Source of the DNA: Thalia democratica
Lineage: Eukaryota
Assembly: GCA_965202585.1 (NCBI GenBank)
Contig: OZ241831.1
Span: 54,932,001-54,996,000, forward strand
Reading direction: 5' to 3'
Length of the DNA: 64,000 bases
Position 1 is the stretch's first letter. The number at the start of each line of letters is the position of its first letter. Of this stretch, positions 25,462-31,096 are shown one piece after another. The translations under genes were made by a program, and so were the position numbers. The notes beneath the pieces were generated by a model. It saw only the letters and a program-made list of their open reading frames with translations. It made no database searches and was not told where the DNA came from.

Positions 25462-26920
25462 AAAATTTTGGGGTTTTTTTGTCAATTAAACAAAATAAAT
25501 ACTTTTGAAGTCTTAACCCACTTTTTTCACATCTGGCCAAGTGACTAAAATATTTTCTAGTCCTAACCTATAAGCTAACAAAACTTTTACTTCTATGTTA
25601 TAAGCTTTGCTATAATATCTCTTTTATCTGCAATTTTTTAAATAACTACAAAATATACAATAATTAAAACACATATTAACAATTTTAGTCAGTTACCAAT
25701 AAAAATTTTACACTGAAAAAAATCAGGTATAGACTAACTTGATTTTATCTTACAAAGTTCAATATTTTCAACTTTAATTATAATGATTAATGTAAACCCT
25801 CTTCGCCACTAAGCCAATAATATTGAAAGTTTTTTATTTGTAATAATAATTTTATTAAATAAGTCGTATAATTTCAGTAGAGTTTTAAAATGATGAATTT
25901 GGTAATAATCTTACAAAAACATATTGAAAGGGTAAATATTGAAATTATTCAATCTTTACAATAGTTTTTTATTAGATTAAGCCATTTCGTAGTACTAAAC
26001 AACTGAGATAATTAAAACCTCTTTAAAACTAAGTTTCAAAATTAAATTTTTCTACTTTAAATAATACTTATAAAAACACTTAAATGTTTATTGTAAAAGC
26101 TTTAAAAAATTAAATAAAAAAAGACAACAGTATAGCTTGATAATAAAAATTTATTCATGAAAACCAATTACATAACTTTGATTAACTAAAATGATATTTT
26201 TCTAGAAGCATTGTTAAGATATAGTTTTTGATTACTTTAACTTTTAAGACATTTGTAGAACGTTTTACTAGGATAATAAGATAAAGTGTAAGAATGAAAA
26301 GAAAATGTAATAAAATTTAACGCTTAAAATAATTTAAATGAGTTTCTTTTATATAACAGGAATACGTGTTTAAATGATAAAAACCATTTGTATTAAGTTA
26401 TATTTAAATTGTCGTATTTTTTTATTTAATATTATTTTTTTACAGTTTAAATAAAACACTTTTGACTCTTAATTATAGAAATAAATGAAAAGAAAGCAAA
26501 AATGAAGACTTAAAACTTAATTCAACTATCAGCTCTTCAAAGTCATGGTATTCAAAGTTATGGCTTTAGAAAATGAAAGAAAAATATTAAAAAAATGATA
26601 AACCAGAAGTTAAATATGTTTAAAATTATATTTTAGCCTAACAGAAAAGTTTGATTAAAAGTTTTAAACTTCTTTATTAGTTCATAAAACAGAGTTTAAA
26701 CACCTTAAAAAATAATAACCAATGTTATAATCTATTTTGTTACAATTTTTGTAAAAATTTAAATTTTAAAAATTTTTTGAATGCCCTTTACAATTAGTTT
26801 GTATCATCAGTACATTTGTAAACCAAAAAATAGCAAAAATGCAGCAAAAAGCAAAATTATTCTTTAATAAAATAAAAACTAGATCAAAGCAAAAACATGT
26901 TAGTCATGGTTTCAACAGTT

Positions 26921-26926
26921 TTTATT
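26921..26926 (-). terminator. Candidate AATAAA polyadenylation signal of the EGF-receptor gene
   Basis: First AATAAA I found on the minus strand, ~100 nt downstream of the stop at 27028. The hexamer is common in AT-rich DNA. Confidence 0.3.
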
Positions 26927-27027: not shown

Positions 27028-30000
27028 TTACATCAGAGTTATTTCATCCCCGATTCCTGATTCAACTGAGACTTTAGGAGCCTTCGCCTCTTTTTCCTCG
27101 GCCACATTCTTGTTTGCAGAAGACCTGACTATTGAATTGATGGGGATGTTATCGGATTCGTCTGAACTGTAAAACGCCTGAAACAACATTTATTTTTTAA
27201 TTTTTTTTTATACAAATACTTTTTTGAAACTGCTTTGTCTAGTTTTAAAAATATCTATAGATTGCTTAAATATTTTTAAATTTAGTGTTTAGTTTTAAAA
27301 GTTTTATTAAAAAATCGTCAAAAAGAGTCTCATACTTACCTGGTAGAAATGCTCAGTTTCAACAGATTGCTTCTTCTCCCTCAGGTTTTTTGGTAGGACA
27401 GTGGCGTAAACTGATACTTGTTCTGCCGGTACCTGCGCTGGATTGCTCCCGTCATCCTGATTAATCCTGATCATTTCCTGATCCCCTTCTTGCTGCTCAT
27501 CAGTTTCCTGTTGACCCTCCTGTGTCTCGCTTGCGTTTTGTTCGTTCGTGTTCACTCCCTGATCATCATTCTGTCGACTTTCCTCGTCCGAATCGACAAG
27601 ACGCTGTATTTTAATTATTTATATAATATGTTTTTTTAATTAATGTAAAGAACTTTATAATAATCAAATTTAATTTATATTTGTTTTTTTTACGATTAGA
27701 GTAATAAAAATATTCTGGGCAAAATTAAAATAAAGATTTATTTTAAACAAAACGTAAGGTTGTGACTAAAGTATTAAAAAAAAAAGTTTGTATCACATAA
27801 CTTATAAAAAACTTACATTATAAAATTGTAATGCACAAATAAAATGAACGAAGCACTTACATTGATAGAAGTTATAGAGTGGTATATGTTTTGTTCTTCA
27901 GTATTGTCTCCTGAGTTGTCCACTAGATTGTTGACTTGATTTCTAGACAATATACTATCTACAGGAAAACTCCAAGGTTCGTCATCACATCTGTAATTAA
28001 TTTAGTTTTAATCATAACGTAATGGTTTTAACAAAAACATTAAGTTTACTTTGTACTTTTAGTGCTTTAGAAGTTTTAATAATCCAGTTTAGGTTAAAAG
28101 TAGCCTTATAAATTTTTCCCAAAAATATATTTTCAAGTGTTTGTGCTTATAACAGTATTTTTAAAATTCAAACTTACCTAATAGGGGGCAGACTCCTCGA
28201 CTGAATTGGGGATGGCCTGAGAACAGGGTTTGAGCTTATAATAATTGGACTCGACTGTCTCATAGAGACAATTTCGTATCGAACGTTTGAAGTTGAAGGG
28301 ATCAATCTTGTTAGTGAAGGTTTATGTGATACCCTGTTTTTTTTTTTGTTTTATGGGTGAATGTGGAAATTTTTGAAACTTGCCTAAAACACGTTCATTT
28401 GGTATATCTAGCGAATCATATTTCTTTATGCCAATAATTATGTTGTGTTTTCTACGATTTTGTAACATGATCTATTTTAATGAGTATATTTGAAATTTAT
28501 GAAAGTTATTAAAAAATATAAGCTTATTTAAAATGAAAGCCTTAAAATATTAAAAATAAAATCAAGTGTTTTACTTGAAAGAGTGTTAATAATGTTGTTA
28601 ATTTTGTAACTAAGTAACGTTTTTAAACAAACAGTTATCTGCATTAAGATATTCATGAAAGTATTTATGATTAGTCCTCTACTGGATATTAGCAACCTTC
28701 AATCTTAAAACGAATGCTTTCAAGTAAGTAGTTTAAAAATCACTATTTATGACTTATTTTAAGTGTTTGTTCAAGGTAAAAATTAATTAAAAAAACTTAA
28801 AATGGCAAGTTTTAAAACAACTTGAATATAATATTACTCGGACATTTTCAACTCAGTAACCTTTAAATAGTATACAAAAATATTTTTTTTTACATTAAGA
28901 TGTTATGACCGAAATGAGTTATAAACAAAACTTTGGTAAGAAAATTTTACAGTAAAATTTAAAACATATTTTATGATAGTTTAAAATAAGCTTTACGTAA
29001 CTTTTTAAAAAATATACAGTGTTTTTTATTGAGTTTAGAGTAAACGATGTGAAAAAAATAAAGTTTTTTTGTTACCGTCTGTAGCAGGCAAAGTGGATGG
29101 TTACTGCCAGGATGACACATAAACTAATGATTACAATTATCATTATTATTTTGTCTGAACTTTCATTTTTAACTTCTTTTCCTTCTATTGAACCTGTTGA
29201 TATTTTAGTAAACTTTTAAAAACAGATAATTCAAGTTGTTTATAGAGTAGGTTTCCAGCATAGTAGTTTATATAACTTGATAGTTTTTTCATTCAAAAAC
29301 TCTTTTTTTTTTATTTTTTGAAGTTAGTTAGTTAAAAATATTATTTAGTCTACGCTAACTTTTAGTCATCTAACAACCATATACTTTTGAATCTAATGAG
29401 AAATTTAGGAAATAAACATCGCTTTAAAGCTAGTCTTCACCTACTTTAAATCATTTTTTTGTTTATTTTTATTTTATATCGTAATATAATACCTAAGAAA
29501 ATTAACAGATAATATAATAACAATATATTAGTAAAAAATATAAATATTCCTCCATTAATAAGTTTTAAGCTAAGAAAAATAGCTAAAATTTTCATGTAAA
29601 TATAAAAGAATAAATTGTACTAAACACATCATTTTAACACCTTACAAAGTAGTTAGTCGAGAATCTGAAAACTTTATAGGAATAAGAAAAAATAATAAGT
29701 AAATTTTAAAGTTTTATCTATAATAATTGCTTCACTGGCTTTAAAAGTAGACCTAACCAATAGCCAGTTTTTTATTAAAACAAAAAATTGTATTTTAGTA
29801 TGTTGACTAAAAAATATTAAGTGTTATTAGATATTGTGAGTATTTACTTTTAAGCACATACACTAAAATGTTCTAAGTGAGCTATTAAACTTACTCAAAA
29901 CAATATTTTTTTAAATGATTAAAAGTTTAGCAAGTTTTTGGTTGGTTCCTATACTCATAAACTATTAATCTTTATAACTGTTACAGTTTATTCTATGATA

Positions 30001-31096
30001 AATGCTTATTTGTTAAGCTTACGAAATTGACAGCGTGATCCAAAGTAGCCTGTAGGACAAATGCACTTGGGTCCATTGTACTCTTCATAATAACATTTGC
30101 CAGTCGTACAAAAGTCGTCAACATCACATGGATCTATAAATGTTAAACTTTTTAAAAAAAGTAATACGTTTCAAAATATATAGCTGCTAAACCATGAGAG
30201 TCCATTCTTCTTAAGCTTTATTTTTAATGTAGTTATTCATTTGACAAAAGTTTTTGTATAATTTTTTTATTCAAAACAAAAACTTTCTTTAAAAATTAAA
30301 ATAAAATGTAGAAACTCATAAACTATAAATACGAAGTTAATGTGTTGTTTTAAAATTACAAGAGAAAATAAATATAGGCTACAATGTAATTTAATGTTGG
30401 AATTTATAATGGCGACACATATTAACTAACAGTATTTAAACTGATCCGTGATACAGTTGTGATCTGAAGCGAAACTTTTGAATTGTTTGTTGTAGCATTC
30501 CGCTGTAAATAATAATTTATTTAGTTAAGGCAAAAATTAAAAGCGCTTGATAACATTTTAAACAAAACCAGGTATAAGTGTCTTGGTTTTAAATTATTAA
30601 CAAATTAATGTTTATCGATAAAGGTTAATCAATAAAGTATTAAGTTAACAATATTAAATTTTTTCTTTTTTAACTTCTTACTAGTTTCGCAAAATTGCCC
30701 ATGAAATCCAGGTTCACAAAGACATGCTCTTGATTTATCTGCCGTTGTGATGCACGAACCGTGTGTACAAGTGTTTCTGTGGTTACACTCATAACTCGCA
30801 TCTAAAAATTAGTTTCATCAACTAGAAAAGCTAAGTATTAAAGTATTTTTCAGTGTATTATTCAAGTTTAACATTTTTTGAAAATTATTTAAGAAATTTA
30901 TAGAATTTAAAAGACTTCTGATAAAAAATTTTTTGTCAACTACATAATTTAGTAATCTTAAATCATGTTAAAGTTATTTATTGAAAAGTATACATTTGAG
31001 TTATTAACAAACGTTTAAAACTAATCTTCACTTACTTGCAGCACTGGACAGTATAAAAATGATTATGGTTATCATACACAACTTGGCTATTTCCAT
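27028..31096 (-). CDS. Type I transmembrane receptor with signal peptide, 2 EGF-like domains, TM helix and ITIM-bearing cytoplasmic tail (~410 aa); 1-nt frameshift in exon 6 as given
   Basis: Nine exons, all GT-AG and phase-consistent: 31036-31096 (MEIAKLCMITIIIFILSSAA, signal peptide); 30682-30801 (EGF1 CNHRNTCTHGSCITTADKSRACLCEPGFHGQFC); 30431-30502 (2-Cys linker); 30023-30133 (EGF2 CDVDDFCTTGKCYYEEYNGPKCICPTGYFGSRC); 29076-29193 (TM IIMIIVIISLCVILAVTIHFACY then RR); 28178-28383; 27861-27990; 27340-27603 (track ORF 27307-27555); and 27028-27177 (ends ...GIGDEITLM*). Exon 6 is 206 nt where the flanking phases require 207. Confidence 0.9.

Follow-up and report, generated by a model that had tools for sequence, protein, structure and literature searches.

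A nine-exon gene of a pelagic tunicate predicted to encode a type I membrane protein with two EGF modules and conserved tyrosine motifs in its tail

Growth factors of the EGF type are notoriously hard to recognize from sequence. Across animals these ligands share only the EGF module and, usually, a transmembrane segment (PMC4914847). All known ligands of the EGF receptor (EGFR) are made as type 1 membrane precursors, which have their EGF module beside the membrane and undergo shedding by ADAMs (PMC5017282). Here we describe a gene on the minus strand of a 64,000-nt stretch of contig OZ241831.1 (positions 54,932,001 to 54,996,000), which is called the window below and to which all coordinates without a contig name refer. 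The locus, 31096–27028, belongs to a pelagic tunicate and contains an intact gene of nine exons, the predicted product of which is a type I membrane protein of 393 amino acids with two EGF modules, EGF1 and EGF2. As judged from sequence, the membrane-proximal module EGF2 resembles the EGF module with which EGFR/ErbB ligands bind their receptors more closely than it resembles any EGF of the Notch type. Type I membrane proteins that combine EGF modules with tyrosine motifs are a known kind, and the product belongs to it.

Inhibitory receptors such as PECAM-1, SIRP-alpha and PZR are single-pass proteins which carry the immunoreceptor tyrosine-based inhibitory motif (ITIM), (S/I/V/L)xYxx(I/V/L), in the tail. 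Ephrin-B and neuregulin are bidirectional membrane ligands. CED-1, Draper, MEGF10 and PEAR1 are type I EGF proteins signaling via tail tyrosines. A fourth group, the EPIYA/EPxYAxV proteins, comprises the bacterial effectors CagA, Bep and AnkA and mammalian Pragmin; EPIYA segments are intrinsically disordered, and EPxYAxV, which mammalian proteomes contain less often than expected, has been called a 'master key' for its promiscuous binding to SH2 domains (PMC3593179). An earlier reading of the window, referred to as the sequence-only reading, had proposed a lineage-specific inhibitory recognition, phagocytosis or adhesion receptor with two ITIMs and a PDZ-type C-terminus, and had placed it beside CED-1/Draper/MEGF10 and cnidarian receptors.

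Gene model and predicted protein

Joining the candidate exons gives nine exons with GT-AG borders throughout and one open coding sequence of 1182 nt that ends in TAA (Table 1). Among the nine, exon 8 alone appears as an open reading frame of at least 58 amino acids, in agreement with the single exon that the sequence-only reading had seen in its open reading frame track. The exons have a GC content of 41%, compared with 21% for the introns and 24% for the entire window. The three ectodomain exons 2, 3 and 4 are each in phase 1-1, the usual layout of shuffled extracellular modules.

The predicted protein consists, in this order, of a signal peptide, EGF1, a linker with two cysteines, EGF2, a stalk, a transmembrane helix and a low-complexity tail of 234 amino acids. 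The signal-like hydrophobic segment at the N-terminus comprises residues 1–22, with a hydropathy (KD19) of 1.98 over residues 1–19; the transmembrane segment comprises residues 137–159 (KD19 = 3.04) and is directly followed by RR. EGF1 has six cysteines and reaches the gathering score of the Pfam EGF family (PF00008; 24.0 bits, cut-off 21.5). EGF2, scored as an isolated exon of 36 amino acids, lies slightly below the same cut-off with 20.1 bits; it also has six cysteines and finds many EGF matches in the PDB. An N-glycosylation sequon (NAS) is formed at the junction of exons 1 and 2. The anatomy given by the sequence-only reading (signal peptide, two six-cysteine EGF modules, transmembrane helix with basic stop-transfer, long tail) was confirmed, and its positions for VRYEIV, SVYATV, NIYHSI and the terminal T-L-M were all exact. 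It had not mentioned the linker exon, which is found with both cysteines in four further genes of the family as well (L006, L015, L016 and L017).

Table 1. Features of the gene and of related loci. Coordinates without a contig name are positions in the window.
Feature	Coordinates	Strand	Description
Exon 1	31096–31036	-	ATG and hydrophobic signal-like peptide; residues 1–20 plus 1 nt; donor GTAAGT
Exon 2	30801–30682	-	Phase 1-1; EGF1, six Cys, gaps 5,4,10,1,7
Exon 3	30502–30431	-	Phase 1-1; linker of 24 amino acids with two conserved Cys (E-C-x-N-K...N-C); donor GTTAGT
Exon 4	30133–30023	-	Phase 1-1, 111 nt; EGF2, membrane-proximal, Cys gaps 5,4,9,1,8; end G-Y-F-G-S-R-C-Q-F-R
Exon 5	29193–29076	-	118 nt; juxtamembrane stalk of ~14 amino acids with NES sequon, transmembrane helix, basic stop-transfer RR
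Exon 6	28333–28178	-	Ser/Pro-rich part of the tail; VRYEIV at 28284–28267; conserved P-x-I-I...I-Q-x-R-S-L-P-x-I-R block
Exon 7	27990–27861	-	Conserved start [DE]-x-[WY]-x-x-P-x-D; end E-E-x-N-I-Y-H-S-I (NIYHSI at 27890–27873)
Exon 8	27603–27340	-	Acidic, Glu/Gln/Asp-rich, then V-Y-A-T-V-L-P-K-N-L-R-x-K-K (SVYATV at 27414–27397), the most conserved tail motif
Exon 9	27177–27028	-	A-F-Y, acidic Ser cluster, conserved P-I-x-x-I-V, Lys/Glu-rich end, C-terminal T-L-M (27039–27031), TAA
AATAAA polyadenylation-like signal	26920–26925	-	~100 nt 3' of the stop; weak evidence in DNA of 24% GC
A11 run	28337–28347	-	Directly before the exon 6 acceptor (cag/G); inside intron 5, non-coding in the model
Type-B member (L016+L023)	C7:55033000–55049000		EGF1, linker, EGF2; transmembrane exon 3–4 kb downstream
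Type-B member (L018+L024)	C7:55280800–55296800		EGF1, linker, EGF2; transmembrane exon 3–4 kb downstream
Type-B member (L025+L017)	C7:55363000–55379999		EGF1, linker, EGF2; transmembrane exon 3–4 kb downstream
Distant EGF-EGF genes (L019–L022)	C4:73131889, C8:53463873, C10:22202704, C10:22375880		Same 108-nt in-frame EGF2 exon
ErbB/EGFR-family receptor gene (L028–L030)	C5:45127512–45146634 (45.127–45.147 Mb)	+	Furin-like, GF_recep_IV and kinase exons

A genome search with the EGF2 exon identified six members of the family, this gene included, within about 0.5 Mb of contig C7 (54.96–55.48 Mb), so that the gene has at least five neighbors of its own family and is not a singleton. L006 had first been found by single-exon searches as two weak collinear matches 520 kb away on the same contig. 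It is a full paralogue of 398 amino acids with nine exons, identical intron phases and 35% identity to this gene, and L015 is a recent duplicate of L006 that has kept all nine exons and their splice sites. Since both paralogues share the exon structure and phases as well as the lengths of exons 4 and 5, the gene model is supported independently. L006 and L015 have the same type of tail as this gene. Between the two, dN/dS is 0.19 (dS 0.25, dN 0.047), and on the basis of this ratio we consider this tail type to be under purifying selection.

Three sequencing runs were aligned to the locus, none of which is recorded as RNA; their contigs are genomic and cover the introns. Joints found in these runs have AT-rich sides of 20–27 nt; none of them coincides with an intron of the model (0/8), and they were taken as noise. 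That no run recorded as RNA covers the stretch would fit a silent or mis-modeled locus, that is an untranscribed young pseudogene or exons joined wrongly, as would the absence of an annotated full-length protein among 15 billion public proteins. A partial list of allelic or sister-species differences contains 10 nonsynonymous and 9 synonymous changes among those listed, which points in the same direction although the list is too partial for dN/dS. We nevertheless regard such a locus as quite improbable. The frame stays open over nine exons with canonical splice sites, the GC content of the exons is twice that of the introns, and the two paralogues combine the same exon structure with the low dN/dS. 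Moreover, metagenomic contigs of orthologues keep the borders of exons 7 to 9 while their introns have diverged, and the listed differences inside YATV and TLM are synonymous.

An upstream open reading frame in another frame (28322–28468) is dispensable, since the gene model is open without it. Paralogues have acceptors at the place equivalent to the exon 6 acceptor (cag/G).

The membrane-proximal EGF module and the ligands of ErbB receptors

EGF2 (36 amino acids) was searched with phmmer against all PDB sequences. It matched the ant-venom protein Mg1a (E-value 7.9e-7), which is an ErbB-activating EGF mimic (PMC8851504), followed by HB-EGF (1.4e-5), TGF-alpha (2.5e-4), betacellulin (6.8e-4) and amphiregulin (1.9e-3), as compared to 0.019 for the best Notch EGF. 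Epigen, epiregulin and EGF rank above or level with this Notch module. The top PDB match of EGF2 from L006 is betacellulin (7e-5), and EGF2 of a cluster member with a second tail type (type B, see below) has the same ligands on top, albeit weakly (0.013). As controls we used EGF1 of this gene and EGF2 of the unlinked gene L019, both of which rank Notch EGFs first, in the case of EGF1 followed by HB-EGF. EGF2 shows several hallmarks of the ligands: an aromatic residue before the second cysteine, a glycine between the second and third, C-I-C, G-Y-F-G-S-R-C and a hydrophobic residue five positions after the sixth cysteine. It is also the best-conserved module between this gene and L006 (57% identity, compared to 25–41% elsewhere), and is 97% identical at the protein level between L006 and L015. 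With the end of EGF2 about 14 residues from the transmembrane helix, the protein has the type I precursor layout described for EGFR/ErbB ligands (PMC5017282, PMC4914847). Pro-TGF-alpha, HB-EGF, betacellulin, amphiregulin and epiregulin likewise have their EGF module a few residues above the membrane, Mg1a being a soluble mimic.

A candidate receptor is encoded in the same genome. The ErbB/EGFR-family gene on contig C5 contains Furin-like, GF_recep_IV and kinase exons (Table 1), and one kinase exon of this locus holds HRDLAARNVLVK..ITDFGLAKLL. When a single kinase exon was searched, the best 60 PDB matches were all EGFR, ErbB2 or ErbB3. A search for Recep_L_domain gave matches at C5:27.03 Mb and C2:29.6 Mb and none in the region of the ErbB gene, whose L-domain exons were not located.

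Tentatively, and short of calling it probable, we favor the view that the protein acts in the manner of a membrane-anchored precursor which resembles those of EGF ligands and whose tail carries sorting or phosphotyrosine motifs. It would be a precursor of the pro-TGF-alpha, HB-EGF or betacellulin kind, and EGF2 would be presented to an ErbB receptor either in a juxtacrine manner or after shedding at the stalk. The resemblance of EGF2 to EGFR ligands comes close to a match with a known family of other function, and speaks against the receptor-type protein of the sequence-only reading.

Several observations count against a ligand-like precursor. The cysteine gaps of EGF2 fail the ligand consensus CX7CX4-5CX10-13CXCX8GXRC (PMC8172503): the distances between the second and third, fourth and fifth, and fifth and sixth cysteines and the G-S-R-C fit, but the first-to-second and third-to-fourth distances are too short. 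Loops A and B, which have 7 and 10–13 residues in EGFR ligands (PMC8172503), have 5 and 9 here and are in this respect nearer to a generic EGF. Among the members compared, this gene alone has the arginine of G-x-R-C; the others have Q, K or H in its place. The E-values given above rest on a module of 36 residues, and a language-model feature search (Atlas) with EGF2 returned generic EGF-like clusters only. Finally, the protein differs from EGFR ligands by its additional N-terminal EGF, the two-cysteine linker and the tail of 234 amino acids with several conserved motifs. A second EGF together with a long conserved tail is unusual for EGF-type ligands, and one published screen for such ligands demanded a single EGF (PMC4914847). 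Because the cysteine spacing fails the strict consensus, we do not assign the protein to the EGFR-ligand family and speak of a resemblance only. With this restriction, the gene family provides specific candidates for ErbB ligands in the tunicates, a lineage for which an expansion of EGFRs has been reported (PMC4914847).

Conservation and possible functions of the tail motifs

Homology was searched exon by exon and not with the spliced full-length protein. Exon 8 searched against 1.84 billion representatives found three short metagenomic open reading frames only (P0001–P0003), which are 53–63% identical, and a profile of five exon 8 sequences searched against 5.8 billion proteins found the same three. 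All three relatives originate from ENA metagenome assemblies, one of them a TARA ocean metagenome, and their contigs add exon 7 (L010) and a part of exon 9 (L008). A search with exon 6 found no second copy in the genome and no database match, and word searches with exons 6 and 9 remained blank. A scan of JGI metagenomes with the exon 8 profile gave 599 pattern matches, none of which was confirmed, and the Atlas feature search with the tail gave nothing above 0.81. As far as these sequence searches reach, the collections contain no annotated full-length protein of this family, and the only relatives of its tail are a few marine metagenome fragments. The lineage-specific character proposed by the sequence-only reading is in line with this outcome, the public protein sets having yielded exon fragments of metagenomic origin only.

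In one relative, an ENA metagenome contig of 585 nt (L009), exon 8 runs directly into exon-9-like sequence, without the intron or the A-F-Y/acidic block, and there is an in-frame TAG where L008 has GAG. It could be a processed or decaying copy or an assembly error at low coverage (1x).

Comparison of the paralogues and the metagenomic orthologues revealed conserved motifs in each part of the tail. Exon 7 ends in the motif E-E-x-N-I-Y-H-[SE]-[IL], which is kept in the TARA orthologue L010 (EEENIYHSI) and in the paralogues (EENIYHEL). The exon 8 motif [VIL]-Y-[AT]-[ST]-[VI]-L-P-K-N-[LM]-R-x-K-K is kept across metagenomic orthologues and paralogues; its tyrosine, LPKN, arginine and KK are invariant in a five-sequence alignment, and L015, which is outside that alignment, has VPKS. 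Exon 9 opens with a block of [AS]-[FL]-Y, an acidic serine cluster and P-I (AFY/SLY...[DE]SD..PI) that is kept in L008 and in paralogues; L015 has AFF at this place and lacks the tyrosine. Exon 6 ends with the conserved sequence I-Q-x-R-S-L-P-x-I-R. Of the three tyrosine motifs pointed out by the sequence-only reading, two are thus retained in homologues, namely NIYH and the exon 8 site, while the third, VRYEIV, has no tyrosine at the corresponding position of L006.

The two literal ITIM matches in the tail of this gene, VRYEIV and SVYATV, compare with 0.32 expected from composition-preserving shuffles (P(>=2) = 0.034). Together with a C-terminal T-x-hydrophobic and the conserved Y-A-[ST]-V core, which resembles SHP2-type sites, they are what could be expected of an inhibitory receptor recruiting SHP-1/2 or SHIP through these ITIMs and binding a PDZ scaffold through T-L-M. 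In every homologue aligned (P0001–P0003 and L006), however, the exon 8 site has P or K at -2, and the tail of L006 does not contain a single strict ITIM. The part that is conserved runs on to L-P-K-N-x-R-x-K-K, outside an ITIM. The T-L-M end is missing from both paralogues, L006 and L015, which end in G-I-E (the orthologue contigs end before the C-terminus), and the ectodomain consists of EGF modules where ITIM receptors have Ig or lectin domains. Since the -2 residue is not kept in the homologues aligned, nor the tyrosine of VRYEIV in L006, a strict ITIM receptor was rejected. We conclude from this comparison that, strictly defined, the protein does not count among the ITIM receptors, and an inhibitory function of the kind just outlined is very improbable. 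A membrane-bound growth-factor-type signal is more likely than an inhibitory immune receptor. The case also calls for caution with motif scans, as a literal ITIM match in one sequence failed the comparison with paralogues and orthologues.

An engulfment receptor like CED-1, Draper or MEGF10 with a minimal ectodomain would share with this protein the type I EGF build and tyrosine motifs in the tail. Those receptors, however, combine an EMI domain with numerous atypical EGFs and with both NPxY and YxxL motifs. Here we found two EGFs only, no Pfam match to EMI and a weak score of 15 bits for EGF_PEAR1L, far under its cut-off of 37.5. The tail of 234 amino acids contains neither NPxY nor a YxxL-x(n)-YxxL pair, and there was no sequence match to that family. 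A kinship with CED-1/Draper, which the sequence-only reading had named for comparison, was rejected for lack of EMI, NPxY and an EGF array, and a function of this type is exceedingly improbable.

How the conserved tail motifs would act in a ligand-like precursor can be put in two ways. Motifs of the form YxxPhi are found at 4/5 tail tyrosines (P = 0.01 in shuffles), and the tail of pro-epiregulin likewise contains a YXXPhi motif, in that case a basolateral sorting signal (PMC5017282). The motifs E-E-x-N-I-Y-H-x-[IL], (E-P)-[VI]-Y-A-[ST]-V-L-P-K-N-x-R-x-K-K and F-Y with the acidic serine cluster would represent short linear sorting or endocytosis signals. The same motifs could possibly serve as Src-type phosphorylation and SH2-docking sites.

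The latter function is also the basis of a different explanation, which we consider possible but doubtful: a signaling or adhesion receptor in which the EGF pair binds a partner and Src-family kinases phosphorylate the two conserved tyrosines, so that SH2 proteins such as Csk or SHP2 can dock. Both tyrosines are preceded by acidic sequence, the residue at -1 being I or V. E-E-x-N-I-Y-H-x-[IL] and [VI]-Y-[AT]-[ST]-[VI]-L-P-K-N are kept across species and paralogues, the conservation of the flanks extends well past a bare YxxPhi, and the type-B relatives retain SDEP[IV]Y[QK][ED][VI] at the same exon end. At the exon 8 site the orthologues P0001 and P0002 read EPVYASV and L015 reads EPIYAMV, both of which match EPxYAxV (PMC3593179); L006 reads EPIYTTI. 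This gene itself, however, has VSVYATV and lacks the E-P. A further argument against a receptor is the tiny ectodomain, the best-conserved module of which is ligand-like.

The similarity of the homologues to the 'master key' is, at the level of sequence, a resemblance. As in EPIYA proteins, their E-P-[IV]-Y-[AT]-x-[VI] is embedded in an acidic and probably disordered segment, but those proteins are injected effectors or a pseudokinase, whereas the present protein is an endogenous animal membrane protein. If the phosphotyrosine sites of the tail are real, the family would offer a natural example of an endogenous animal membrane protein with a docking site of the EPxYAxV type, a sequence otherwise known from bacterial effectors, and also a model for reverse signaling by an EGF-type ligand.

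A ligand-like precursor and a tyrosine-phosphorylated receptor are compatible with each other, and bidirectional signaling is possible. In its specific form this would mean a salp-lineage family of tethered, EGFR-ligand-like proteins that signals both ways, with EGF2 engaging the ErbB receptor of a neighboring cell and the motifs E-P-[IV]-Y-A-x-V and E-E-x-I-Y recruiting Csk or SHP2 after phosphorylation by Src-family kinases; we regard this combination as unlikely. Should both the ligand and the phosphotyrosine readings be true, ephrin-B and neuregulin would provide the working model, since they too are tethered ligands with a conserved tail that carries tyrosine motifs or a PDZ-type end. This likeness is purely architectural, as the protein has no ephrin or Ig domain and its tail no sequence similarity to theirs.

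Further family members and host lineage

The genomes of pelagic tunicates are poorly annotated, and the gene and its five neighbors fill a gap in this annotation. Three members of the cluster (L016, L017 and L018) have the second tail type, type B. The start of the exon equivalent to exon 7 is homologous in both types (Y-x-I-P-I-D-S compared to W-S-F-P-V-D-S), and in type B this exon ends in the tyrosine motif S-D-[ED]-[PF]-[IV]-Y-[QK]-[ED]-[VI]. The type-B tails share K-K-V-P-S-Y-R-R-P-V-I-P-S-L-H-H-P-T-R as well as S-D-E-P-I-Y-Q-E-V at the exon end. In EGF2 of L017 the third cysteine is replaced by leucine, and this copy may be degenerate.

The search with the EGF2 exon also detected more distant EGF-EGF genes on contigs C4, C8 and C10 (Table 1). 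No transmembrane exon was found within 6 kb of any of these (L019–L022). The two genes on C10 form an inverted pair 170 kb apart.

The host lineage was determined from the mitochondrial COX1 gene (contig C1833). It contains 34 AGA/AGG codons, which are located at universally conserved glycines, and the motifs WFFGHPEVY, GGGDPVLFQH and LIGGFGN appear only under the tunicate code with AGR=Gly, the cnidarian and invertebrate codes giving R or S instead. Because COX1 reads correctly only with AGR=Gly, the host is a tunicate and not a cnidarian; a cnidarian origin was rejected on this ground, and with it the cnidarian framing of the sequence-only reading. With one orthologue fragment coming from the TARA ocean metagenome, the host is taken to be a pelagic tunicate, most probably a salp. 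A search for cellulose synthase (PF03552) as a tunicate marker gave no match, which is uninformative when searched exon by exon. Nuclear copies of COX1 with many stop codons, resembling nuclear mitochondrial DNA insertions, are located at C4:56842736–56945724 (within 100 kb) and at C757:30096–33638 (L012–L014).

The surroundings of the gene in the window contain almost no long open reading frames and no recognizable neighbor within about 10 kb on either side, with a GC content of 20–30% throughout. For positions 28796–29164 and 27737–28304, runs labeled as the same organism yielded two contig versions, one of them identical to the window and the other about 8% different (30/369), which suggests very high heterozygosity or a mixed sample.

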